Made by a program: the position numbers and the translations under genes. From Hyphochytrium catenoides (Eukaryota > Protista > Hyphochytriomycota), in the NCBI GenBank assembly GCA_900088475.1, contig FLMG01004535.1:1-64000 (forward strand): DNA of 64,000 nt. The letters are read 5' to 3'. Below, piece after piece: positions 3,001 through 63,267 of this stretch (position 1 is its first letter; the number at the start of each line of letters is the position of its first letter). The notes under the pieces are model-generated. The model made no database searches. It saw only the letters and a list, made by a program, of their open reading frames with translations, and was not told the DNA's origin.

Positions 3001-3508
3001 AACATGGCTTTTGCAAAAGGCGGGAACGTGGAGGGCAAGAGAGAGAGAGAGGGGAGGAAGCCATACATAATGACAGCGCGATGGGGGCGGCAGCTGCATT
3101 CTGAGGTTAGAGGTGCAGCCAAAGAGCTCGAGCAATAAGAGGTCAAGATTGAAGCTTTGTTATCTGAAGACAAGTGCTTGATCATCAGTTTCTCATTGCC
3201 GAGAAAGAGAGAGAGACAGATCTACGAGCAGACGGGCACCGCCTGCCAAACGTTTTGGGGAGAGAGAGAGAGAAAGAGAGAGAGAGAGAAGAAGAGCCAG
3301 GGGCATTCAAAGTTTGGAACCATCGTCTGTTGGGATAAGCATAGGGCCGGCACAGCTGAGAGATCACTGGCGGGAGAGAAAGGTGCAACCTCAAAGGTTC
3401 GGGTCTGAAACTCTCTGTTGCGCTGGCCATTGCCATTTGCGCCTGCTCCGTCTTGATGCAATCCATAGAGCTTTGATTAGATCCAGACTTTACCCCCGGC
3501 GGATCGTG

Positions 3509-4336
3509 ATGTTCAAGCAGGAAGCAGAGTATGAAATTGCAGTTAGGGTGCTAAGTGCCCGTAATCTTCGTATTCTACAAGGAAGCTCTGGGGATTATAG
3601 TCCGTATGTGAAGCTGACAATCGGCCCCAATAGCGAAACCTATTGCACTCGAGTTGATGAGCATGGCGGCCGAAATCCATGCTGGAATGAGAAGTTCATA
3701 GCTCCAGTCGTCAACCCCAATGATGTCATACAGGTGCAGATAGTTGATCAGTCCCGCAGTAACAGCAATAACAGTGAAGACAATGAAAGCGCGACCCTTC
3801 TCATCGGAGAAAGCGTTGTCCCAATGCGACAATTTTGCTGCGGTCAGCTAGTGACTGGGTGGTATCCTTTGTCCAGCAAGACTGGAGCTTGCGGAGAGAT
3901 TAACCTTAGGATCCAGATGGCGCCATGCAACAAGAAGAATGACTCCAGCATGGGGTTAGGTTCTCCTGAGGTTGAGTCTTTGCCTACATCCGCTGTATCG
4001 CCGGTGCATAGAGTCTCTTCAGCGCTGGCGCCAGAGCTCCCGACAATATCACCCAGCCCATTTATCTCTGCTCTCGCTAAAGCAGGCGAATCTGCAGCAG
4101 CTAGGGAGCTTTCGCTCTCTTCTCCGGTTATTGAAATGTCACCTGCACCACTAGAATATCATACTGGCCAGCGGCGGCGCTCTGCAAACGGTGACGCCGA
4201 CGAGGAAAACGAAGTAAGGGAATCAATCTTGCGGTCAAAACGACCTTGTACCAGTATGCAGACGTTGCACCTTCATGCACCAATGGCGTCAGGAGGGGAC
4301 GGTTCTCTTATGCAAGAGAACAAGTTTCTTCTCTAA
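3509..4336 (+). CDS. C2 domain-containing protein (SRC2-like, single exon)
   Basis: From ATG 3509: MFKQEAEYEIAVRVLSARNL...YSPYVKLTIG...YCTRVDEHGGRNPCWNEKF...IQVQIVD...LIGESVVPM...GWYPL...GEINLRIQM is a complete C2 domain. A Ser/Pro-rich disordered tail follows. Confidence 0.85.
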   Translation: MFKQEAEYEIAVRVLSARNLRILQGSSGDYSPYVKLTIGPNSETYCTRVDEHGGRNPCWNEKFIAPVVNPNDVIQVQIVDQSRSNSNNSEDNESATLLIGESVVPMRQFCCGQLVTGWYPLSSKTGACGEINLRIQMAPCNKKNDSSMGLGSPEVESLPTSAVSPVHRVSSALAPELPTISPSPFISALAKAGESAAARELSLSSPVIEMSPAPLEYHTGQRRRSANGDADEENEVRESILRSKRPCTSMQTLHLHAPMASGGDGSLMQENKFLL

Positions 4337-40166: not shown

Positions 40167-43100
40167 TCAGAAATCTCGTGTCATCGAGGTTCTTCTGGAA
40201 AGAACTCTTTGCCGAGCAGATGCCCTGCTAGACCTTCTCGAGTCTGTAGAGAGGGCTCTCTGCATTCGTGGTGATATCCTAGGCGAGCTTCGCGGACTAA
40301 AATGTATAACATAGAGGTCTGGGTCGAAGTCATGTGGTCGAGGGAGCTTATTGGGATACACTTCCTCGTTAGCGTCATCTTCATGAGCCACTCTGTGTGC
40401 GAAGATATCAGCAACGTAGGTGGCGGCATGGGAGAAGTCAATGCGGTGGAAGTTGATGATATTCCTGCTATAATGGCGCTTGGAGCGGAAGACACGGAAG
40501 TCTTCTTCTTCTTCTCTTTCTCCTTCTATGACCTCCACTTCAGCTCGAGGGTCATCCCACGCTAGACGAGAAAGATAAACTGCATCATCATCTTCTGCTA
40601 GAGCAATGTTGGTCACGACGTGTGAGAGTGTGACCTCTGGTTGCACTACAAGCACTCCTAACTGGTCCAACTCCGTTGCAACGTTAGCATCTTCTACCAC
40701 GGCGATGATCCTTCTGGGCAATTGAATACTATCGACAAGATGCTTGCAACAACGCGTTGTTCTTTCCGTGTCATCATCAAAGCATACAACGACGACGTCT
40801 GTAAGCTGGTCAATGGCGTACGTCTTCTGTCTTCCCGAGTCTTGGCCACTTCTGCTCTCCTTAACTCCCACGTCGATGTGGGATAAGAGCTTCGCTTTGT
40901 CCAACTCACACGCTGGGGCGGGCTCTTGGCCCTCTCCAGTGGACGACGTGTCCGTTGTCCTCTCGTCTTCCCTTTTCTCTTCGGGCTTCTGCCCCTCCGT
41001 GTCTGGCTCCGCTGGCTTTCGCTTCAAAATATCTGGCGCAATCACTTCATCAACAAACTCGAACTCAAAAGGGTTTGCGCCTTCCCCGTGGGCCTTCATC
41101 GCCGTGTCCATTACAGGCTCGTCCTCCTCAGCTATGGTTCCCTCCTCAGCGGTAGCTGGCAGCACCGGGACACGGACGTGGATGCCTAAGGAGCTCATGT
41201 GAAGGGCGAGAGAGAATGAGAACCTCCCTTTTCCTAGAATGGCCACGTTGTCTACCAGCCGCATCCCGTGAACACTCCTTCCTCTTCCCAGAGATCTTCC
41301 TCTCCGGAGAGGAAGCGATTTGCTGCTCACGCTACTCGCTCTCTCCCTGCCTGTGACAGTAATGTCGACTGTGGCCTCTCCACTATTCTTCACCCCTATG
41401 GAGGAAAGAATAGGGCCAATCATCTGGTTTATCACAACCGCGGAGATGATTGTGGCGGAAAATTCAGAGACCCAAGTGTCAGAGCTTATACTTAGCACTT
41501 CCTGTGCCAGCCCTAATGCCACGCCTGCCTGTGGAGTGAAACAGAGCCATAGGTTGTTATACATAACAGGAGGAAGAGAGAGAAGGAAGCGACAGGAGAT
41601 GTATGCGCCGAGAAAGATGGAGACAAAGCGCACTCCGATAAAGACGCTCATCAGAGGAATTGCCTTGACAACTGCACTCAGATTGAGCGCGGCACCTGGA
41701 GGAGTTCAACGTGAGGGAGACGTCAGTGCTTACCTCAATAAAAAGAGAGGAAAGAGAAAACGACTCGTCTAGAGAACCAAACCAATCAACGGACTGACAA
41801 AAGTCTTTCTTTTTTCGAAAGCCAGTAGAGTCTGTAGAAGTGGTTGGACAAAGGGAGAAGCTAGCAAGAGCAGCCTCTTTGCACATAGAGGCGGGAGAAG
41901 TCCTAGGCAGAGAACCCACAGCCTAGCTCATGAGAGATCGAGGCTAGAGAGAGTCCTACAGTACAGGGAAGAGAGAGCGAGACAGAGAGAAAGAGCGTAC
42001 AAACGAAGAAAGTACTATATGACAGACAGGCATCGGCAACAGATCTAGGACGGTGACAATTATCGGGGCAACGACCAGAAGGTAGGTCCTCTGGGGCTTT
42101 TGTCTCTCACCTGTCATGGTAAAGAAGGGCAGATACATCAGCATCGCCGCGGCGTCCAATATGTCGTGCATCTTTCCTCTCAAGCTCGTTATGTGTCCTG
42201 CAGCACAGGCTGCCACCATGCAGACCAGCAATGGTTCAAACTTTATGTGCCAGTAGGGGCCCCAGGCCGAATGAGAGCCCTCGGCAATGTAATCTGAACC
42301 GATGAAAAAGCCAAAGCCCACGCCCATCCACAGAGTACCTTGACGACAAGCATAAAATGACCGCGTAAGCCACAAATCAAATTATAGGCAAGAGTTCAAA
42401 AGTGGAGAGTAAGCCTGGATGTCTATGACGTGCAGGGTCAGAAACAAAACCAGAAGAGAGTTCTTTCTCTCCACATGGAAAGTTAGCGCGAACAGAGAGG
42501 GAGAGATAGAGACTAACCTCTGAGAAACAATGCCCACCTCCGCCTTCTAACCTCAAACTCTCCGAGAGGACACCAAAGAATAAAGGCGACCACCGTTCCA
42601 AGTATGAGCCCAACCAAGAGATTAGAGAAAACAATGCCCAGGCCAAATGCCACGTGTTCGCCTCCCAGCTCCAGCGTGGAGCAGTAAATGGTAGAGAGAA
42701 TGCGAGAGACAGAGAAGGAGAGAAGGACGAGGAGTTCCGCTATAGAGGTAACACCAAGCATCAAATTAGTGAAGGGACCCTTGGTGCGAAACTCCACGTG
42801 CAGCGCCAGGGCAGTTGCAGGTGAGCCCAAGACTGCAATTGAAGAGAACATGAGAGAAATCGCTAGCTGGCAGGAGGAAGAAAGATCCCCGTAGAAGAAT
42901 GGATCCGCAGCGAGATAAAGGGTGACCGTCATCAGGAGCATCGTCGCTACATAAATCCCGGCTAGAATGACTAAAATATCCCGCAGCTGTCCCCGTAACA
43001 CTGGGAAGAAGACCTCATAACCTGCCTGAAAGGAGATGAAAGATAGCGCAAGAGATGTAACAAGCTTCTGTAGGCGTGAAATGAGGTCATCTGAGAGCAG

Positions 43101-43977
43101 CGCAGAGACGTAGGGCCCTGCTAATATTCCTACGATAAGGTATCCGGTGATAAGCGGAAGCTTCAAATATGTCGGGAAGAGAAGTCCCAGTGGATACGCA
43201 GCAATGGAGACGATAAAGAATCCCAGCAAATATCTTATGGACTGCCACACTTCTGACCAACTGGACCACGCTCCAGGCTCGTCGCTCTCTTTTTGCTGTG
43301 CCTCCGCTGACGCAGAATCGGTAGCTTGGGGAGCTGCTAGGCAGATAATAGAAGAAATTTAGAGAGTCGAGGAGTGAAAGGGAGCGAACCAGGAGAAATA
43401 GAAAGGAAAAGACATAACCAGAGCGCGAGGTGAACACAGACGGCGGTAGGTGGAGCCGCGGGCGGGAAAAGAAAGGAGAGAGAGAGAGAGAAGAAGAAGA
43501 AGTAGGGAGACCGAGAAGAAGCAAAGTGGGGAGGATTGTACGTTAGTTATCAGTCTTCAACTGGGACAGACAGATGGAAGCACAGTAGCCGAGAGAAGGA
43601 TGAGCGGCATCGAGAGGATGCAGCTCTTGCGAAAGTCTTCAAGGCAGAAAGGTTGAGAGTAGGATGCCCTTGGGGAGAAACGTAGAGAGAATGGAATGAA
43701 CACGCGGCAATCTCGGACCACAGAAGAGAGACACTGAGCCGTTTGGCACACCTTCTGTCACTGCTTCCACTCGCCTCAGAGCTGTTAGCCCCGGCTTCCA
43801 AAGATCAACGCTCTTTGAAGATGAGAAATATGACGCAGTAGTAGAAGGGAGAAACGAAGAGCTAGAAGGACGCCCCGTCGCAGAGCCGAGGCCAAGGGAG
43901 AGAGAGAAGAGACCAACTATGCCAAGTAAGAGAGAAGAAGCTCTCCGGCACACACTCCTTCGGCCAGCATGCTTCAT
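40167..43977 (-). CDS. Cation/proton antiporter (CPA2 / Na_H_exchanger family) with C-terminal RCK_N (TrkA-N)-like domain
   Basis: N-terminal hydrophobic leader. TM exons: LKLPLITGYLIVGILAGPYV, ALSFISFQAG, GSPATALAL..KGPFT, FEPLLVCMVA, LPFFTMTGAAL, QAGVALGLA, VVINQMIGP. Cytosolic tail: VAILGKGRF...TDVVVVCFDDD...RIIAVVED...LDQLGVLVVQPE. Confidence 0.9.
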
Positions 43978-48102: not shown

Positions 48103-48616
48103 TCCACTTCCCAAAGGCAGTTGTGTACACATTGCCAACAGCCGGACCTAAGGTAAACCAGGGGATGTCGCCCTGATCGGACAGTGAAGAGGAATGCGGT
48201 GTCCTCCCGTACGAGGTCTGCACTCGGGTGAGGCGTGTCCTCTGTACCCTGTGCCCTTTATTATCACAGCACTTGGTACTTGTACACCTCTACCACGACT
48301 ACTGTAAAACAGTACTGTTCTCTACTGTTAATGGACGGTACAATTACAATTACAAGTACAAGTCGGCGTTCAAATCCAAGTCCACGTAGAATCCCACCTT
48401 GTGTACTTGTAGCAGACCGACACTACTTATTTATTTGTTGTACATAAGTACGTGTACGAGGTTAGGTAGGACTTGTAACTCTCCCTACTTGGACGCACAA
48501 GTACTTACTCTACTGACGAACAGTAGTCACGGCCAAGATAGAGACTTCTTACGGGAAAGAAGAGAAAGGATCATAACCGGTTGTGAGGAGGGAGAGGGGA
48601 GGCCGAAAAACGAAGG

Positions 48617-48619
<3 letters not shown>

Positions 48620-48661
<42 letters not shown>

Positions 48662-48747
48662 NNNNNNNNNNNNNGAGAGAGAGAGAGAGAGAGGAAGAGG
48701 AGAGAGAGAGAGGAAGAGGAGAGAGAGAGAGGAAGAGGAGAGAGAGT
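48620..48747. repeat. (GA)n microsatellite containing an assembly gap (N 48662-48674)
   Basis: GA runs plus about 3 copies of GAGAGAGAGAGGAAGAGGA. Confidence 0.9.
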
Positions 48748-51092
48748 AAGCAGTAATAGTTCGAGGGAGCAACATGAAGAAACACTGGTATCTGTAGGAA
48801 AGAGAGCAAGAGAACAGGTAACCAAAAGGAAGAGAGGCAGTTACAGGGAATAGTCTCTCATCATAATAGTAAGACTCAACTTTTCAATAAACAGTAAAAA
48901 CCACCAGCAGCTCAACGATCACTTCGTACCTCGTGGCCCGATAGACCAGCGAGTGAGTCGGCCTAGGGTAGTAGAACTAAGTGAGACCGAGAAGAGAGAA
49001 GCACACAGCGATGAGGTTCTTCTCCCAGGTCGCTCTACCTGTACGTCTCACAGTCGGGTTTTTAGAGGTCAAGCCGGCAGACACCTCATCAAGGAGGTAC
49101 ATCTGCAAGCCGGGCGAGTGAGGGGAGAACAGCAAAGGGACCCTTGGCAGAGATGTAACTCCTATCCCGGACTAGAATGGCTTCGCTTGTCAAGCGTCGA
49201 CCTTGCAAAAACCATTAAACGGAGGCCACGAGGTGGCACGGTGTCGGATCGTTCCCTTCTCCTTCAGGATGTTAGGGATAGGGTGGTCTGTTCTGTCTTC
49301 TCCACTTGCCTTCCCCTCTTCTTGAACGGACTGACGTGTGAGTTATCTCACGGGCACCTCTTAGGTCGCTGTCGTCCTGCTGTCAACCTCTTGGCTGGCG
49401 CTTCCTCAATGGGCTGGAGGGGGTGGAGAGATCGTGGCTGCTTTGATAATAGTAGTAATGGACGGTAATGCGACAGGCGGATGCTGGCCCGTAGATCTAC
49501 TGTGTGACTCGCTTCAGTTAGCGTTCTATTCTTAGAGTCTGAAGGAGTCTGGTCGACATACCGACCGACCAATTAGCAGCCGGAGTTTTATGCTAAGGCG
49601 TTTCTGCACTCGCTTCTCTGGACCTCAACCTTCCATGCCCTACATCTTGCTGTCTATCCTCTCTCTCCTCTGTCTCTTTCTCTTCTCTGTCTCTCCCTTT
49701 CACCTTCCCTTCTCTCCTTGTCCTCCTCGGCCGCGTTCCAAATACTCTTCTGCCTCTGTTCACTATCTACGCTCTTCCATCCTGGTCGTTTCCTTGCTGT
49801 CTCTTGCTGGAATTTTCTGTTACCATTTCCCACCTCACCCGTCAACTTTACTTACCTTAACACAGCTTAGAGGCTGCTCTGTCTCGCTAACGCAAGGACT
49901 AGTTGGTCTATATCTCTCTTTTGCTCTGTCTCTCTTTCCTCCTCAGTCATGATGGAGCTGACTTCTCTTTGTTCCCAGTAGCCACCGCTACACTTCCCCT
50001 CTTGTCATCTCTGTCTTCTTTTGCCTTTCTCTATTCATCTGTTCTGCGTCTAACCCTGAGAGTCATGGAAAGCGGGTCCTTGCTATAAATAGCCTCGTCC
50101 TTGAGGTAGAATGGCGAGGCAAGGAACAGAGAATAGGCTTCCTTTGGCTGCTACCAGTCGGACCCTCCTTTCTTGATCTTCTGTATCAGTCTTCCTCTGT
50201 TTCCATCACAATTGAAAGGTATATTCTGCATGCTTCATGACGACGGCTCCAAAGCTCCAGCTGCTTGTGGCTGGCGAGCCACATCCTGCCTCCTCCCATG
50301 GAACGTGCTATGCGTTCTTTGTTTCTGTTTGAATGTGCTCCCCTTAGCTTGCCCTTTCCTCTTCCCATCCTCTTTTCTTCTCCTCAGTTCCGTCCCTGCT
50401 CTCCTTCCTCTTTTGACTACCCATCCACATCGGCTGCTGCTCGTCTTTCATTCTCTCCTTCTTCTCCTTGGGTGCATTTTGGCTCTTGCTGCCCCACGTG
50501 GTCGTTGCGCTTGTTCCTCTTCTAGTACTAGACTTTCGCTGGCTCCTCCTCTTCCGTAAGCCGCTGGCACACTCTTTCTCCCTCTCGGTTCTCTAGTTCT
50601 ACTATCTGGACTCTTCTCTCTCTCTCTCTCCGGTATGCTTCTGTTCATGAGGTGTTACCGAGCCTTCCTCCTCAGTAGCCAAGCATACCCTCCGTTCCTC
50701 CATCAACGTTGTGGATGATCTACAGTTTCCCCTGTCTTTCATTACTCGCAGCACCCTTACGCGTCTCAGCTCCATTGGTGGACTTCTGACTGTTGTCTGT
50801 CATCCTTCTCTGTGCTGCCGACCTCGTATGGCCGCAGAGGGAGGAAGTTTGGGAGAGGAGAGACGAAAGGGATCCGATGATTAGGATGAACCGATGTGTT
50901 CAAGCAGAAGTGGTAAAAGACCACGGCTCTCTCCCGCTGTGATCGACTCTTCTTCCTTTTTAAGGTGAGCTATCAGAGAGAAGAAAGAGCATCAAGCCAG
51001 AGGCAGAGAAGGTTGAAAGACGAGAACAAGCTTAGTCCGCAGTCTAACTCTTTCCTCTCGGATATTGACCGGTAAAGTAAGTGATACTTCCT

Positions 51093-54000
51093 ATGGCTGC
51101 CGCGGAGGAGAGAAACGCAAGCGGAACAGGGGAAAGCATGTCTCTTTCGCCCTCTCCTTCTCCTGCCTTCACTTTCCTCCTCATCCACGAGGATGCGGCA
51201 GTACGGCACGAGCTGGAAGATCGTCTATCGTCTCTTCAGGGCGGAACAGGTAACACCATTGACGAGATTGCCCGTTGCGTGGTTGCAACCTTTCTTTCTC
51301 AGTTACATTATCTCCCTGCCCTGCTTTCAGTTCATTTGTTCCACTCCGGGCGAGAGGCTGTGGTCTATCTACTGGGCTCTGGCACCAAGGAAAGAGAGAG
51401 CCAAGCGGAGGAGGAGGTGCTGAGAACTGTCCTCTTCATCTCTCCAAGCATCAGTAAACTGGACGCCCTCACCACGCTTAGGGCCTTGCAGGACTCGCTC
51501 AAGCCTCTTGTTGACTATGTGGCTGGTAAGGCTCCCCTCAACCTTATCTCTCCTCTATCTCTCTCCCATTCTCTCTCCTACTCCTCTCTTACACCCTTTC
51601 CGCTTGTTTCTCTCTTTTCCTGTCTCTCTCGCCCTCTCTGTCTGACTCGGTCTCTCAATCTCGACGCTGCCTTTTGTCTCTGTTCTCCTCATCCGTTCTC
51701 TCTATTACCTACTGTTTCTCTTCTTCTTCCTTGATGGCTCTATGTAGCTCTGGTCCTGGTGTCTCTCTCAACTTCCCTACCCCTTTGTGGGCCTCTTGGT
51801 CTTCTCGATACCTCGTCTCTCTCTACCCATTTCCTCCTTCCGTTCTTGGTGCTCTGAGTCCTTATACTCTTACCCTCCCATNNNNNNNNNNNNNNNNNNN
51901 NNNNNNNNNNNNNNNNNNNNNNNNNNNNNNNNNNNNNNNNNNNNNNNNNNNNNNNNNCTCTCTCCTCACTCTCTCACACGCCCTCTCTCTCTCTCCCTCT
52001 GTCTTCTCTTCCCCATCATCTATCTCCATCGCTGTCTTTCTATCTCTTCGGTTGTTAGTGCTCGCTGATCAGCCTGTGCCACGGATCTTCATGCAATGTC
52101 TGAGCGAGAGACTGCTTATCGTTCCTGCCAGACCCTCAGTAGAAGACCTTCGCCGGCTTCTCTCTTCGTTTTCGTCTCGACCTCTACCCTCTTCATCTCC
52201 AAACTCTCCTCGCCAGAGTCGTGAGAAAGAAAGCAAGAAAGAGAAGAGTCTTTCGGGTGACGAGCCAGTAACAGACAAGGGCGGTGGGGATGGAATAGCT
52301 GAGTCCACAGCAGAGGAGAAGCCAAGAGGGGAGAGAAGGGAGAAGGAGAGAGAAAAAGCTTTTACCTCTTCTCCTTCCCTTTCTCCCGTCGTACGTTTGG
52401 ATCAGATGGAGCTCTTCGCTTCGATGATGAGCAAGACTGTTACCTTCTCTTGGAGGTCTGACCTTGATCGCCTAGGGATCGGAGGAGACTTGGCCGGCCT
52501 GCTAGGGTATCAATCAGTAGGAGAGAGAAGGCAAGGACAAAGAGGAGAGAGAGACAGTCATACCTCAGGACTGGTTCCTCTTTCTCCTGCCCAAAATACG
52601 GATGGCACTATTATGAGGACAGAAAGCAGAGGAGATCGGAGTCTCACATTGGAGGCATGGTTATCCCTAGTAGGGCCGGGAGACAGAGAGAGCGTGCGAA
52701 GAACTTTTCACTCCTTTGCCTCGCTCTGTTCCGCTGAGAAAGATCGCGATGAGGAAATGGGAAGGACAAACGGAGTAACACTGCAGAGAAAGCGAAAGGA
52801 GCTTCTTCTGTACTATCAGATGCAGTGCAGAGACGGCTCTTGGATAGATGTGCGGCACACCTGCCAAGCCGGTTACTTCCAAGAGGGAGAGGAGGAAGGA
52901 GAGACAAAAGAGAGCGATAAGCATCGGGCTCCTTTCCTTTTTGGACTGGTCACGCACTATTCTGCAGGTTTCACGGTCGTGAGCCCCTTCTCTCCTCCTC
53001 TTCCAGGAGGCGAGATGCCTGGGTTGGAAGTAGCGGAGGAGAAAGGCTCAGTCAACTCTCTCAGCTCCCGGCATCTTCCATCTCTTCCTCCTCCTACTGC
53101 GGTGACTGGAAGAGAAACAGAGACACCCGAGACAAGAGGAGGAGAGGGATATGGCACTCTCTCCCTGAAGCTGCATGAGATGATTGTCCCTCGCCTAGAG
53201 TCTACCCTCCTCCTGCTCTCTTCCCCTGATGGGGCGATCCTAGAGATCGTAGCCAACAATGTAAGGGCGGTCGCGTTGTACTTCTCTTTGGGAAAGCTTT
53301 TGCACAGAAGTTCTCTGCTTTTCGCTGTCCTTTGTCTTCCCTAGCCCAGCCGCTTTGTTTCGCGAGTGCTTCTTATACCGCTTTCTCGCCTCATCTCTCA
53401 CTATTTTCTCTTCTGTTTTCTCTCTCTCTCCTCCGAATCCGTGTCCTATTTTCTCCCTTTTCTTTCTTTGTCACTCTCCTTCTTTCTTATCTGTTTCTCT
53501 CTTCCTCTCACATATACACATACTCTGTCTCTCTTACGCACACTCTCACTTTTCTCTCTCTCTGTCTGTCTCGCTCTCTCTATGTTTCCCGACAGATGAG
53601 TCCATTGCCTCGCTTTTCCCTCCGCACTCCATTGCAGTCCCACGCCTTCTGGCAGGGATTCCGAAGCACCTGCGAGGAAGCTGTCAGAGAAGCCAGCAGA
53701 GGTATCTCCGCTAAGTTCACCGTCCCCATCGACCCTGCAGCCAAAGCAGCCGCAGACAGCGGAGTGAAAGAAGAAGCGCAACAGCCTCCTGGCGTCTCCT
53801 CATCTTCTACTTTCTCTCAGATGGAGTCTCCGTCGCCCCATGGTGTTGCCCAAGAGAACCCCGTGTCCTATATAACCTGCGTGATAAAGCCACTGCTGCA
53901 TGATCAGTGGGACACTGTCCGCGTCCTTCTCGCAGAGATGAAGGACGTGACAGATGTTGCCCTTTCAGGCCCGTCATTCTCTCTTCAGTCCACCACTTAC

Positions 54001-57000
54001 GATGCCCGAGGGCATATGAGAGGTGGAGGCGACAGTGAGAGAGAAGAAGCAAGAGAGAGAGATGAGCTGATGAACAGTGAGAGTGGACAGAGCCTCTTGA
54101 CAAGCAGCTTTTCTTCGTCTTACTCCTCGCCCTCTTCCTTCTCTTCTCCTTCCATCTTGGGCTCTCACGTACTCCCTCGGGCAAGCTCGAGAGAGAGAGA
54201 GCGGAGCACTCTTCCTCTTCTCCCTCCGTCCAGCAGAAGCCCAGTGCGCCTCCTGGGAAAGAGAAAGATTGCCAGTAAAGAGCCAGAGGGAGAGGGTCGA
54301 AAGAAAGTCACAGAGGACAAGGTAAGGCGCCATCTCTTCCTCTTCATCCCTCTCTTCTTGTCCAATCCTGCTCAGGGCCAATGGTTTCCTTATTCACAGA
54401 TTCTCTCCGGGCTTCTTCGGTACTTCTTTCTATCTTTTTCTTCTTCCTGTCCTTGACTGACCAACCCTTTGTGCTGATCATAGAATGGCTCGCTCTGTCT
54501 GCCTCTCTATTACACTCTTTCTCTACAGCATCCACCCAGTGCCGCAAGCAACGAAGCTCCTTCAAGTCTTCCGTCCGAGCGGCATCAGTCTCTGCCTGGC
54601 ATTATCTGTCTAGAGCAGCTTCTCTCCTCAGTTCCGCCAGATGTCTCTCTTCATTTCCTGTCTTTCCTCCCTGCAGCCTCCCTTTGTGCCCTATCTCAGA
54701 CATGCAGCCGATGGAGAGTCATGCCCGACAGTCTATGGGCTTCTCTTCTGATCAAAAGATGGCGACCACCCGCTTCTTCTCTCTCTCTATGGTCAGCTGA
54801 TATTCCCACGTCGCCACCAAGAGAAAGAAGTGAAGAGAGAAGTAACTCTTCATCTTCATCTTCGGTGTGGAGTGGCGCAAGAGATGAGCCTGATGGAGAA
54901 GGAAGAAGAGACCGAGGACGAGGACGGCCTCCTGTCCATACTATGGTGGGAGGAGAACGAGTGAATGGAGGGGCAAAGAGGCTTCTCCCCGTAGTCAGAG
55001 AGAGAAGAGACAAGCGCTGGAAGCTCCTCTCTGGACTGCACGATAGCCTCCTTCCCCGTGCAAAACTGCGGTATAAAATGTTAGCATCGTCGGAGGCAAA
55101 TTGGCGCAAGGGCAAAGTATCAATCAAGCATTTAGTAGAGGGCAGCCACACGCGGGCTGTCCTTAATGTGCATCTTATAGAGCGGGGAGAAGGAGAGGGA
55201 GAGCTACTTTTAGGAGAGAGAAGGGGTAGGGAAAGGAGAGGCTGGACGCAGAGAGTACTTAGCGCAGGACTGGATGGCTGTGTAAAGCTATGGGACATGT
55301 CATCGGGCTCTCTCCTCCGTACCTTATGGCCCAACGGTCCAGTGATGGACGTGGAAGACGGATCTCAGGGCCTTCTATCTTCTCTCATCATTCCTGGGCT
55401 CCAGGGAGAACATAGGCTGCTGGGCCAGGGTGTATACCTCTTGACAGGTGAGATGTAGGGCTCATTGTTGAGAGTTCTCTCTCTCTCTCTCTGTGTGTAT
55501 GGCTGCCTCTGTCTTCCTTTGCGTCGTTTCTGACTCCTTTCTCCTTTCGCCTATAGTTTGATACATTTGCCTACCTTTCGTCCATGGATCTTGGCTTGCC
55601 CATCTTTCCCCGTTGTCTCTGCCTTACGTTCGTCGCTGTTTTCCCCGCGTAAGGCAACCGTCAAGGCATCCTAAGTGTCATGAACTTATGGACGGGCTCC
55701 TCTGTGGATGGCCGCCTGCCAGCATGGGCAGGAGACCGACGGCGCTCCAACTTGTGGCTGGGTCTTGAGCCTACTCTCTCAGGAGACAGGGTGCTTGCTT
55801 ACTCTGCGGATGGGCCAGCAGGACCGGGAGACGGCCAGCTCGTGTTGGAGTTCCAGCTGAGCTACGGCGAAGAGGAGGAACCTTTCCAACAAAGAGCAGC
55901 TGGAGGAAGAAGAGGCAGAGTGGGCAATGGAAGAGTTCTCTCGTCATTTTCTCCTCGCCATCCCGAGAGAGAGGATCAGGAGAGAGAAGTCACGCCCTCC
56001 CGCTTGATCTCTACCCCTCCACCGTCTTTCTCTCGTGGGACAGGGACTGCAACGGCCTCTTCTTCCTCCTCCAGCGCATCTTCTGCTGCGTCTTTCGCTT
56101 CCTCTTCCTCTTCAATCTCTTCCACCTCAACCAATAATGGGTTGGGAATCCGTCTCGCTCGCGTCTACGAAGTCGCCGATGAAGCTTCATCTGTCTCTTC
56201 CGCTATTTATAACCCTCAGGGTTCTCTCATGGCTGCTGTTACTAGTGACGGTGCAGTGATGCTTTGGGACTGTGACTTGGGAGGAAGACCAGGCACCTCT
56301 CCTACCTCTGTCTTCTTTTCGGGCTCCTCTCCTCTCCCTTCTCAGGGGCCACTAAGGACTCTTAGACCCCCTACGCCTCTTGTCCGACATCCTCTCCTTC
56401 TCACAGAAGATGAAGACGCCGCTGCAATTCCTGGAGGCAGGAGGAGGCATGGCCATTGGGCTGTTCACTTCCAGCGTTCCGAGCCTTCTTGTCTTCTGTT
56501 CTCTGGTGGCGAAGATCGAATCGTTCGCATGTGGGATCTGCGCTCTTCCTCGGGTGAGGCTATGAGGCTTAGTCATGGCCATGCAGATGGCATCACCAGC
56601 ATAAGCAGCTACGGCTGTGCACAGGTAATGAGCGGCCTCTATCTCTTTATCACTCTCGCCGCTTATCCAGTTCATCTAGTGCGCAGGATCTTAGTCTTGG
56701 TTCCTCTCTCCGCTCTCTTCCTTCTGTGGCTCTATCTTCCTGGCTGTATCTTCATCAATATTCCAATATCTGATGCTCCTTGTAAGTTGGCAAACTTTGC
56801 CTTCCTACCCCTCCTCTTGGTATAACGCGTTATCTTCCTTTGTCACTTACACTCTTCTTTCTCTCAGTTGATGACAGGAGATGCCAGTGGTGCAATTGTC
56901 CATTGGGATCTTCGCGTCGGAGGCACCAAACTGCATAGGAACAGAGACCATGGAGGAGGAGCAATTAGAGCTCTGGACGCCAATGGCACCTCAGTGGTTA

Positions 57001-57041
57001 GTGGAACTGACAGAGGAGGAGTGAGAGTGTGGAGCTATTAG
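51093..57041 (+). CDS. Pseudo-receiver / PAS / PAS / F-box / WD40 multidomain protein (about 1447 aa)
   Basis: Exons 51093-51249, 51331-51525, 52059-53260, 53596-54321, 54529-55447, 55654-56624 and 56868-57041 are all GT-AG and phase-compatible (4344 nt). F-box: LLSSVPPDVSLHFLSFLPAASLCALSQTCSRWRVMPDSLW. WD repeats: VLSAGLDGCVKLWD, AAVTSDGAVMLWD, LFSGGEDRIVRMWDLR, LMTGDASGAIVHWDLR, VVSGTDRGGVRVW. PAS motifs: WLSLVGPGDRESV, YQMQCRDGSWIDV, IKPLLHDQWDTVRVLLAEMKDVT. Confidence 0.85.
51882..51957. other. Assembly gap (N run) inside intron 2 of the PAS/F-box gene
   Basis: Run of n within a CT-rich intron. Confidence 1.
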
Positions 57042-60151: not shown

Positions 60152-61972
60152 TTATGGATTGATGATACGGTACCCGCGAGAACGTGCCAGCAGCTCACGG
60201 CCGCGAGTTGCCATCAGGGCCGCAACTCCAGCGACAGCAGCAAGGAAAGAGAAGTTCAAGAAGGAGGAGGAGGTCTTCTCGACGCTTGAAGACAGGAGCA
60301 GTTGCTGCTCAGCTGCAGGACCTCGGAGCGAGGCAGAAGTGCCTTCAGCCTTGTTCTCCTTCCCTGCAGAATCAACACCCTCCACCATCTTGTCTGCTTT
60401 GGTAGCATCAGAGATTTGAGCTTCGTTCTCGGACTTCACTGCCTTGGAAACTTCAGCACCTTTGCTAGATGCCAAAGACTTTGCAACCTCAGCCTTATTT
60501 ATGTTTGCCGAAACGTCCGCTACCTCAGCCTTCTTTTCTGCGTTAACCTCATTGGACTTGTCAGCCTTTTGATTGGCGTTGGCAATCTCCTTGGAGGCAT
60601 CGACCTGATCCTTAGCATTAACAGCTTGCTCTACTTGGGCTTCGTCATTGACCTCATCGGTCACCTTAGCTTTCTTGTTCGTCTTGGCACCCTTGGCGAC
60701 GTCAGCCACCTTGTTAGCCTTGACAGCTCCTGTCAAGTCAGCCTTGTCCTCAGCCTCGACAGCCTTTGAGGCTCCCGCCGCTTCCTTGTCAACCTTGGCA
60801 GCACTATTCATCTCAGCCTTCTTTTCATTCTTGAGAGACTCCGAGACCTGAGCCTTCTCACCAGCCTCTGCCTCAGCTTTATTACCTGCCACAGCAGCAT
60901 CGGAAGCCTCATTGTCCTTATTCGCCATCCGCTCCTGGGTGAGTTCAGCCTTGTCCTGAACTCCAGACTTCGTAGTTAAGGTAGACTGCTTCTTAGCCTG
61001 GCTATCCTGCACCTCCTCAGCCTTGTTCTCCTTTTGTCCAGCAGCAATTGTATCGGCCTTCTTGTCGGCCTTGGCTGCATCGGCAATTTTGGCATCCTTG
61101 CTAAGCTCCACCGCTTCAGCTTTGTTCTCGGTGGAGGTAGCCTCGGAAAGGTTCGTCTTCTTATTGGTCTTGGCAGCTTCCACAGCTTCTACGTTGTCTT
61201 CACTCTTGACCTCGTTGGTAACGTCAGCGGTCTTGTCAGACTTGACAACATCAGCAACCTCAGCCTTGTTCTCAGCCTTCACAGCCTTAGGGACCGCAAC
61301 CTTGTCCTCTGCGGCTGCCTTGTTCTCTGTGGCTGCCTTGCCTTCAACCTTAGCTTCAGAAACATCGCTCTTGTCTTTAGCTTGAGTTTTCTTCTGTGTC
61401 CTTGCGGCACGAACGGCTCCTTCCTTATCAGCTCCTTTCTCTTCGGTGACACCGTCACCGCCTTGTGCCTTGGACGGGTCCCGCTTGGCTGGTTCAGGGC
61501 CTAGAGGGGTGTGTTCCGGCGTCTCAGTGGGCTGCGGTTCAGCTACTGGCTCTGGCTCTTCAGCAGGCTCCTCTGGCCGTTCCTCTGGCTCATGTCCCTC
61601 CACACCCAGATCATGCAGGAGCTTGTCAACGGCCTTATCCTGCTCCTCCTCACTCAGTTTGCCGCTCGTTATTTGCTCGATGAGCCTATCAATCTCAGAG
61701 TCCTTCTCTTTATGGTGGTGTGCCTTCCTCTCTTTCTTCTTGTGAGAATAGTGTCCATGGGACTTGCCTTTTGAACGTAGGTTGCTCGTATCTTTGTCAG
61801 AGAGTCCGAAGCTGGAAAGCAGATTGTTTATCTGGCTATCAAACTCTTCAGAGCTCAGATCACCGCTGATAAGGTTGTTCAGAATCTCATCAGTCTTCTG
61901 AGACGCCTTCATCTCCGCCACTGCACAAGCAGCAGTGGCAAGAAGCCCCGCAACAATGAAGTTGAGCTTCAT
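60152..61972 (-). CDS. Secreted/surface-anchored Ala-Lys-Glu-rich repeat protein (single exon, 606 aa)
   Basis: Signal peptide MKLNFIVAGLLATAACAVA and a long open frame with degenerate 12-residue repeats. A C-terminal hydrophobic segment FLNFSFLAAVAGVAALMA is followed by the short basic tail RSRGYRIINP. Confidence 0.88.
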   Translation of the reverse strand: MKLNFIVAGLLATAACAVAEMKASQKTDEILNNLISGDLSSEEFDSQINNLLSSFGLSDKDTSNLRSKGKSHGHYSHKKKERKAHHHKEKDSEIDRLIEQITSGKLSEEEQDKAVDKLLHDLGVEGHEPEERPEEPAEEPEPVAEPQPTETPEHTPLGPEPAKRDPSKAQGGDGVTEEKGADKEGAVRAARTQKKTQAKDKSDVSEAKVEGKAATENKAAAEDKVAVPKAVKAENKAEVADVVKSDKTADVTNEVKSEDNVEAVEAAKTNKKTNLSEATSTENKAEAVELSKDAKIADAAKADKKADTIAAGQKENKAEEVQDSQAKKQSTLTTKSGVQDKAELTQERMANKDNEASDAAVAGNKAEAEAGEKAQVSESLKNEKKAEMNSAAKVDKEAAGASKAVEAEDKADLTGAVKANKVADVAKGAKTNKKAKVTDEVNDEAQVEQAVNAKDQVDASKEIANANQKADKSNEVNAEKKAEVADVSANINKAEVAKSLASSKGAEVSKAVKSENEAQISDATKADKMVEGVDSAGKENKAEGTSASLRGPAAEQQLLLSSSVEKTSSSFLNFSFLAAVAGVAALMATRGRELLARSRGYRIINP

Positions 61973-63267
61973 CACAGCTCAACGTTCCTTACCCTCTGGC
62001 AGGAAATACGTACGAAACTCGAGGTTGAAGGGAGGCTGTTACTACCTTTCTGAAGCTTGCTCTTCTGAACAATGAAGGCACCTGCGCACTAAGGTCTCTG
62101 AGGCTCTGATGCGGTTGAGCAAGGACGCTGGGAACCTTGGGATGAGACGAGGAAAGAAAGAAAGATCGCCGCTGCTTCGCACTTCCGCCGTCTGTCTTCC
62201 CTTCTCAGCGCTTCTGACAGAAGAGAAAAAAGGCTGGCGGTGGTGCGGGTTACCGGTATTAGTTTAGGAAAAATGCTGACTATTACGCTATATGAAAGTA
62301 AGTTGGAGGAATATCTTTGGGCAACGGGGAAGGTTTTGGACACAAGAGGCAGCAACCATGTCATCCTGTCACACACAGCACTAACACAAGTAGCAAAGTC
62401 AAACACAGGCCTCTGTTTTGAGACGGCTTTACCGTTTCTATTCTCTGAAAACACATGATTAGACGAGCTATCCCCAAACTCATATATAATATTTGGGGTC
62501 GTGTTTGAGAATGACATCTATGCACAACTTCCAGGATCAGAATTGCGAGGGCTTTAAGTGTTGGGTTCAAATTCTAACCTTCTTTCAGCTGTTGGGCGAT
62601 AAAGGCCTTGCACGGGCGTATCTTTGGCCTGGTTTTGCTGGTTGAAGTGGCTTCTTCACCAGACAAAGTGCCTGTTGCTGTTGCCAGGCATCATGGCATC
62701 GTCATCTCCCATCAGCTCAATGATGATCTTCATGTTCTCTTCTGCTATTGCAGTCAACTCTTCAGCGGCTCATCGACAGAGTGATAAGGACGGCATGTCC
62801 CCTCCTTCGAATCTTTGAACGCCGCTCTATGGTCCTGGTGACGATCTCGGTGTAGGCGAGAAGGAACAAGGAAGATCCATTCGCCTTCATGCAATAGCAC
62901 TGGCAAGAGAGCGTCTCGGCTATGTGCTGCTGGAGGATGGTCAGCCTAGCTTATGATAGAACTGTGTTTTGAGGGGAGCCCACAGGGCACGTGAAGGATC
63001 CCAAGAATTGGTGATGAGAAAGTGTCAAGGACTATCAGATGATGGTAGATTTGGTAAAAGACTCGGTTCAGGAGAGTGCTGATAAAACGATATAAAGAAT
63101 TAAAAATCACTAGTCATAGCGTTACCCCTGGAGACATTTGTTAGAAGAGATAAAGAAGATTGTGGGCGGAGCCTTGAGAGAATCGTAGTATAGAGCTATT
63201 GCGGGGGGGCCCGTAGAGCTGCACTGGAAAGCTGCTATCTCGGAAGCTTACAAGGGAGAAACGCCAC

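Follow-up and report, generated by a model that had tools for sequence, protein, structure and literature searches.

RESULTS

Gene structure between positions 51093 and 57041

We analyzed a 64,000-nucleotide (nt) stretch of genomic DNA from Hyphochytrium catenoides (assembly GCA_900088475.1, contig FLMG01004535.1, positions 1 to 64,000; here called the window) and focused on an unannotated candidate gene on its plus strand at 51093-57041. The list of open reading frames (ORFs) shows separate plus-strand open frames between 51081 and 57041. Spliced in silico from the genomic DNA, this segment forms one predicted gene of six exons joined through GT-AG introns, with a coding length of 4425 nt and a predicted product of 1474 amino acids (aa). 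The phases at the five junctions (51525/52059, 53260/53596, 54321/54529, 55447/55654, and 56624/56868) are compatible, and splicing them yields a single open frame that starts with the ATG at 51093 and has its sole stop, the TAG at 57039-57041, at the end. The exons and the domains assigned to them are listed in Table 1; in addition, exon 5 carries a low-complexity insert of ~95 aa. Pfam, structure prediction, and homology searches were run on exon pieces and not on the full spliced protein. An Rfam scan of the window found no RNA family.

An earlier note on this DNA, made from the letters and their ORF translations, had proposed a single spliced frame of seven exons and 4344 nt encoding a receiver-like region, two PAS domains, an F-box, and WD40 repeats. 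The single frame stands, and the three junctions named in that note (51525/52059, 53260/53596, and 54321/54529) were reproduced exactly, each with a GTAAGG donor and an acceptor consisting of a pyrimidine tract followed by YAG. The exon count and the length do not stand, and we find six exons and 4425 nt in their place. When we scanned for a seventh exon by looking for further in-frame GT..AG segments of intron-like composition, none had a credible donor. Use of an acceptor 81 nt downstream (55734/55735) would yield exactly 4344 nt, but a WD-type strand would then be lost.

Table 1. Features of the predicted gene, in order of position within the window
Feature	Positions	Strand	Remarks
Exon 1	51093..51525	+	aa 1-145, ends in phase 1; in-frame TAA just upstream of ATG 51093
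Receiver-like alpha/beta region	51171..52168	+	aa 27-181, interrupted by intron 1; putative
Intron 1	51526..52058	+	GTAAGG...TTAG, about 80% pyrimidine; holds assembly gap 51882-51957
Exon 2	52059..53260	+	aa 145-545; 400 codons without a stop
PAS A, PAS_3 type (probable)	52403..52966	+	aa 260-447; two low-complexity insertions; Pfam-matched core 52652-52891
Putative PAS B	53168..53955	+	aa 515-665; split by intron 2; insert of ~40 aa; pattern resemblance only
Exon 3	53596..54321	+	aa 546-787; 242 codons without a stop
Exon 4	54529..55447	+	aa 788-1094; F-box, linker, WD40 blade 1, start of blade 2
F-box	54625..54753	+	aa 33-75 of the exon 4 piece; Pfam PF12937 and PF00646; aligned to the FBXW7 F-box
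WD40 propeller	55144..57038	+	six blades plus one degenerate; interrupted by introns 4 and 5
Exon 5	55654..56624	+	aa 1094-1417; remainder of blade 2 to first half of blade 6
Exon 6	56868..57041	+	aa 1418-1474 plus TAG stop; second half of blade 6, blade 7

The C-terminal half resembles FBXW-class ubiquitin ligase receptors

The proposed F-box is recovered by two Pfam profiles, both of which score above their curated thresholds: F-box-like (PF12937; 37.2 bits, with a cut-off of 24.3) and F-box (PF00646; 27.3 bits, with a cut-off of 20.5). Exon 4 matches human FBXW7 with an E value of 6.5e-11, and the F-box, an NWRxG linker motif, and blade 1 follow one another in the order seen in FBXW7 (query residues 31-68, 188-207, and 241-267 align with chain residues 18-55, 99-118, and 130-156). 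The F-box region also matches FBXW11 and FBXW1A (E values of 5e-7 to 2e-6), and the neighbors of exon 4 in the ESM Atlas are F-box/WD40 proteins.

Downstream of the F-box, where the earlier note had counted at least six WD40 repeats, there are six clear blades, which end in W[DTS] at aa 1042, 1106, 1298, 1387, 1430, and 1472, and one degenerate blade at approximately aa 1111-1165, between the second and third clear blades, for a total of seven. Pfam WD40 and beta-propeller matches occur in exons 4, 5, and 6, and the end of exon 5 matches solved WD40 proteins (phmmer against PDB; E values of 1e-28 to 1e-13). Blades 2 and 6 stay in register over introns 4 and 5. Taken together, the F-box profiles, the likeness to FBXW7, and the WD40 matches support the assignment of the C-terminal half, by sequence, to the FBXW class of receptors of SCF (Skp1-Cul1-F-box protein) ubiquitin ligases, as the earlier note had it, and we infer that this half binds Skp1.

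A separate observation concerns the propeller: a 237-nt contig from sequencing run X4, which is labelled as another organism (organism B), matches blades 5-6 (56417-56653) with 4 differences. It comes either from a close relative or from the same species at low coverage.

Coding signals in exons 1 to 3 and continuity with the F-box exon

All five introns are 70-80% pyrimidine and contain only ~10-15% A, while the exons are balanced, and the composition switches exactly at the GT and AG dinucleotides. A codon model was trained on 1112 homology-backed codons (from exons 4-6, a neighboring exchanger gene, and an ORF with a C2 domain; see below). In the predicted frame, which was the best of the six, exons 1, 2, and 3 scored +0.17 bits per codon, and every intron scored negatively, at -0.2 to -1.0 bits per codon. 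We also compared the gene with that of a second isolate (run X2), in which ~1% of positions differ, counting the best-supported sample of these differences. Among the differences listed, 19 of 36 in exons were synonymous. Within the N-terminal half the figure was 13 of the 25 listed, against 28-32% expected (P = 0.009 to 0.03).

The F-box exon appears unable to begin a protein of its own. Its frame contains no ATG, GTG, or TTG before 54721, a position already inside the F-box, and thus the exon must join an exon upstream. The nearest is exon 3, whose donor is in phase 0. The 207-nt intron between them (54321/54529) opens with a GTAAGG donor and closes with a CTACAG acceptor, it is in phase 0 at each border, and in composition it matches the other four. 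Phases, composition, codon usage, the excess of synonymous differences, and the missing start codon together argue that exons 1-6 would be carried on a single transcript.

PAS-like and receiver-like regions of the N-terminal half

The interpretation that we favor is of one gene whose N-terminal half probably carries at least one PAS domain (see Discussion). A number of results count against it, and they are presented in this and the following sections beside the results that they qualify.

The first of the two proposed PAS domains, PAS A, is probably real. Every named ESM Atlas neighbor of this region at 0.96-0.97 is PAS_3. When a single-sequence AlphaFold model was compared with PDB by the use of Foldseek, PAS domains made up 49 of the 50 best matches, chiefly ARNT PAS-B; the model itself, however, has a predicted local distance difference test (pLDDT) score of only 41, and the best match has an E value of 7e-3 and a probability of 0.98, with template-modeling (TM) scores of only 0.2-0.3. 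The Pfam threshold was missed. PAS_3 (PF08447) scored 17.1 bits (E value, 0.0069) on exon 2 and 19.6 bits (E value, 0.0011) on the trimmed PAS A piece, both under the cut-off of 25.6 bits, and NCBIfam profiles gave no match on the PAS pieces. We call PAS A probable because three weak lines, from Pfam, the ESM Atlas, and Foldseek, agree. The LOV flavin-binding cysteine motif (NCRFL) is missing, as neither NC[RK]F nor C[RK]FL occurs anywhere in the protein.

A second PAS domain is perhaps present at aa 515-665. By eye, this region shows a strand pair ahead of intron 2 and a "DVTD" end. The pieces on either side of the intron gave no match in Pfam or NCBIfam, and the resemblance to PAS A is borderline, since 12 of 500 shuffled sequences score at least as high. 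A local PAS profile made of seven sequences from Escherichia coli genes, for which a widening search gave only AtoS fragments, detected no signal even on PAS A and thus says nothing about PAS B.

For the receiver-like fold that the earlier note placed ahead of the PAS domains, the profile methods are silent, while two other measures give modest support. Pfam found no receiver match (Response_reg, PF00072) on exon 1 or on the start of exon 2, and a local hidden Markov model of 13 receiver sequences from E. coli genes scored -0.6 bits on the spliced N terminus. In hhalign, the alignment to the receiver profile covers only 20 columns (P = 0.039), and hmmalign places nothing. A single-sequence AlphaFold model of exon 1 (pLDDT, 59.8) yielded no meaningful fold match. 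On the other side, Response_reg is the sole named family among the ESM Atlas neighbors of this region (41 hits among the 100 nearest clusters, at 0.90, a level sometimes reached by chance). The second measure was a custom block-chain test, in which five ungapped receiver core blocks are chained and the loops are left free. It gave 27.8 bits for the spliced N terminus of this protein, compared with at most 15.7 bits for 1000 shuffles, at most 0.8 bits for other windows of the same protein, and at most 21.0 bits for 28 E. coli proteins that are not receivers. True receivers that had been excluded from training scored 62-114 bits, so the value lies above the controls but far under the range of the real family.

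Most of the block-chain score comes from exon 1, and the best placements in the whole protein put the strand 1/helix 1 block at aa 27 and the strand 3/helix 3 block at aa 112. The hydrophobic pattern is (beta-alpha)5-like, with an acidic pair, Glu-Asp, after the first strand. The acceptor Asp is absent, and Ser117 occupies its column in the block alignment; where receivers have the conserved Thr, the alignment shows Leu or Ala, and where they have the Lys, it shows Ala168 or Arg169, according to a shift of one residue. The region at aa 27-181 may thus be a very divergent pseudo-receiver, another flavodoxin-like fold, or neither.

The assembly gap in intron 1 and variation in exon 1

The same region is interrupted by intron 1, which contains a run of N that begins 356 nt past the donor and ends 101 nt before the acceptor. 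Both flanks of this gap are ~80% C+T, i.e., intron-like. The contigs of DNA runs X1, X2, and X3 end at the edges of the gap and none bridges it; thus, only the scaffold, good splice signals, and a compatible phase connect exon 1 with the gene, and the gap may hide an additional exon. As a test of the gap, we asked how well the receiver-like pattern runs across the exon 1/2 junction. The result was not significant (126 of 2000 shuffles reach the score), and unspliced read-through of the junction scores as high as the spliced form. A search for sequencing runs of the organism returned DNA runs only, and the junctions are known from genomic sequence alone; no spliced forms were seen in the contigs of X1-X3. 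Within exon 1, moreover, 6 of the 12 listed isolate differences alter the residue.

The introns show a peculiarity of their own. Contig depth is ~162,000 at 53480-53679 (intron 2) and ~2,300 at 51480-51679 (intron 1), compared with ~300 elsewhere. The (TC)n-like stretches of introns 1 and 2 are repeated genome-wide, as a result of which the read table contains many false joints, and these repeats are probably the cause of the assembly gap. Pyrimidine-rich repeats have been described in Physarum (PMC4758236).

Exon 1 itself is variable at 51274-51372, where ten differences fall within 100 nt, several of them altering the residue. In run X1, the second version accounts for ~28% of the depth (90.8/329), and in runs X2 and X3 it is the sole version. 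A second allele or haplotype would explain it, as would a near copy of exon 1.

Searches for relatives

No relative of the N-terminal half was found in our searches, which again counts against the interpretation that we favor. Exon 2 gave 0 matches at an E value of ≤0.001 when compared by phmmer with 1.84 billion representative proteins; exon 4, used as the query of a word-based search, gave 0 matches in proteins of comparable length; and a scan of metagenome contigs found one generic WD40 contig only (L012). By sequence, exons 1, 2, and 3 matched nothing meaningful in PDB, and an exact database look-up of a neighboring ORF returned no record. No PAS-F-box-WD40 protein is described in the literature that we searched, a limited search that is no proof of novelty, and the F-box surveys of Dictyostelium and Toxoplasma within that literature do not mention one.

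Other features of the window

A cation/H+ exchanger gene (PF00999) lies on the minus strand at 42133-43289. Two segments backed by homology, 43289-42558 and 42342-42133, resemble partial proteins of Phytophthora and Pythium (48-54% identity), and the best matches of the exon at 42516-43250 (minus strand) are from the same two genera, at 50-54% identity. These identities are consistent with, and lend support to, a stramenopile source that is not close to Peronosporales, and they reject Physarum, which the pyrimidine-rich introns had at first suggested. On the plus strand, an open frame at 3314-4336 encodes a C2 domain (Pfam E value, 4e-15) and is probably one exon of another gene. A (GA)n-rich stretch at 48399-48749 includes a second short N run, which appears as X in the translation; the purine-rich plus strand there suggests an intron or a repeat of a minus-strand gene upstream of the candidate gene. 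Two long open frames on the minus strand, at 40167-41651 (494 aa) and 60152-61975 (607 aa), had no Pfam match.

DISCUSSION

A proposed receptor with a PAS-bearing extension and the alternatives

We favor, with somewhat better than even confidence, the interpretation that this locus is one gene of ~6 kb encoding a 1474-aa SCF receptor with a probable PAS_3-type PAS domain, and that the PAS domain controls substrate presentation. In such a protein, the C-terminal 690 aa would make up a receptor like FBXW7/Cdc4, whose F-box would dock the chain on Skp1-Cul1-Rbx1 and whose seven-bladed WD40 propeller would hold the substrate degron. The lineage-specific extension of ~790 aa would contribute one probable PAS_3 PAS domain, perhaps a second PAS domain, and a divergent receiver-like region without the acceptor Asp. 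The PAS module would mediate a regulated association, either dimerization of the receptor or capture of a partner through PAS-PAS contacts, which might depend on a ligand, and this association would set both the choice of proteins that the propeller offers for ubiquitination and the timing. F-box/WD40 receptors usually read a mark on the substrate, often a phosphate, that has been placed by other enzymes. Binding to Skp1 and to a degron would be expected of the C-terminal half by its likeness to FBXW7, and any sensing by the PAS or receiver-like parts is inferred; gating by a signal, like the role in a clock or a nutrient pathway that the earlier note envisaged, is speculation.

Unlikely in our judgment, but deserving the closest comparison, is the explanation that the same gene encodes the same FBXW receptor and that its N-terminal arm senses nothing, being fast-evolving and largely of low complexity. 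The PAS-like fold would then be a fixed dimerization or scaffold element that replaces the D-domain of FBXW7/Cdc4, and the other resemblances would be remnants or chance. FBXW receptors such as FBXW7/Cdc4 do dimerize via a segment directly upstream of the F-box. No homologues were detected for the N-terminal half, in which S, E, R, G, and P are abundant and long inserts interrupt the supposed domains. Of its 25 listed isolate differences, 12 are nonsynonymous; the LOV cysteine or a comparable cofactor motif is missing from it, as is an acceptor Asp in the receiver-like region. However, synonymous differences are still in excess in this half, the listed nonsynonymous differences in exon 2 fall in linkers and inserts and not in the PAS core, and PAS domains often bind ligands or switch partners. 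The present data do not separate a fixed association from a regulated one.

We consider it doubtful that the protein is a lineage-specific stramenopile sensor-ligase in a single chain, in which a pseudo-receiver and two non-LOV PAS domains gate an FBXW7-like receptor and pass small-molecule, redox, or phosphorelay input on to proteolysis. That such a sensor-ligase would be a convergent counterpart of ZEITLUPE, built of different parts and without described relatives, is a similarly tentative idea.

An improbable alternative is that two genes lie on the same strand, one for a PAS protein (exons 1-3, with read-through of the proposed donor to the stop at 54454-54456) and one for an F-box/WD40 protein whose first exon, with its start codon, has escaped recognition. 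The 54321-54529 joint is drawn from genomic DNA alone, the frame of exon 3 continues for 45 codons past the donor to the stop at 54456, stretches rich in pyrimidines are found outside introns as well (e.g., upstream of 51000), and conservation is unequal between the two halves, all of which would suit two genes. However, the first start codon in the exon 4 frame (54721) lies inside the F-box, and the 207-nt spacer, with its intron signals, intron composition, and phase 0 on both sides, would have to accommodate the 3' end of one gene together with the promoter and first exon of the next. Hardly credible is an artifact of the gene model or the assembly, in which the N-terminal frames are unexpressed or decaying, or exon 1 is misjoined, and only the F-box/WD40 part works: the unbridged scaffold gap between exons 1 and 2, the second version of 51274-51372 at ~28% of the depth in run X1, the lack of homologues, and the restriction to DNA runs would fit it, but uninterrupted runs of 400 and 242 codons outside pyrimidine-rich DNA, codon usage that fits the predicted frame, the synonymous excess, and the need of the F-box exon for an upstream exon speak against it.

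To our knowledge, among the SCF receptors that have been studied well, only the plant LOV-F-box-Kelch proteins have a sensor domain of their own. If the interpretation of a PAS-bearing FBXW receptor is true, a sensor would have become part of an SCF receptor repeatedly in evolution, here from other parts, and this gene would offer an experimentally simple entry to signal-controlled proteolysis in a poorly studied group, with a single protein, a single Skp1 interaction, and an N-terminal module that can be removed. Its value is limited for now, as two of the three N-terminal domains, like the transcript and the conservation, are yet to be proven.

Comparison with known systems

The receiver-like region can be set beside the pseudo-receivers, e.g., those of the plant pseudo-response regulators, with which it shares a pattern of the (beta-alpha)5 kind and a Ser at the acceptor column. 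Unlike them, it is recognized by no profile method, and its score is far under that of real receivers.

The nearest comparison for the C-terminal half is with FBXW7/Cdc4/SEL-10, F-box/WD40 receptors of SCF ligases with solved structures (2OVP, 2OVQ, 2OVR, 5V4B, and 7T1Y). The F-box, the NWRxG linker, the order leading to blade 1, and a propeller of approximately seven blades are common to both, a likeness that does not imply orthology. In contrast to FBXW7, the present protein has the PAS-bearing extension of ~790 aa ahead of the F-box, a distance of ~120 aa between the F-box and the linker motif (~45 aa in FBXW7), and long low-complexity inserts within the propeller.

The beta-TrCP/FBXW11/Slimb/FWD-1 proteins belong to the same class of F-box/WD40 receptors, although the match to them is weaker than that to FBXW7. 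Receptors of the beta-TrCP kind in animals and fungi degrade clock proteins such as PER, which is itself PAS-bearing, and FRQ, and these are supplied in trans. Whereas such receptors have no PAS module, here the PAS domain would lie within the SCF receptor itself.

In layout, the protein recalls ZEITLUPE/FKF1/LKP2 of plants (LOV - F-box - Kelch), which likewise combine a PAS-superfamily domain, an F-box, and a beta-propeller in one chain, and the principle of coupling a sensor domain to an SCF receptor would be common to both. The parallel drawn in the earlier note appears to hold as an analogy of layout but not as family membership: the PAS domain is of the PAS_3 type and does not have the LOV cysteine motif, the propeller gives matches of the WD40 type only and none to Kelch, and the protein may carry two PAS domains and a receiver-like region. 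Our comparisons found no sequence relationship to ZEITLUPE/FKF1/LKP2.

Additions to FBXW receptors are seen in other protists as well, such as the unusual RING-like N-terminal domain of Dictyostelium FbxwD (PMC10539598). FbxwD and FbxwA, which we liken to the present protein by their descriptions, are also long protist FBXW receptors with extra N-terminal parts; what has been added to them is a different kind of domain, and they belong to another lineage, and the H. catenoides protein would bring a probable PAS domain to this position ahead of the F-box.

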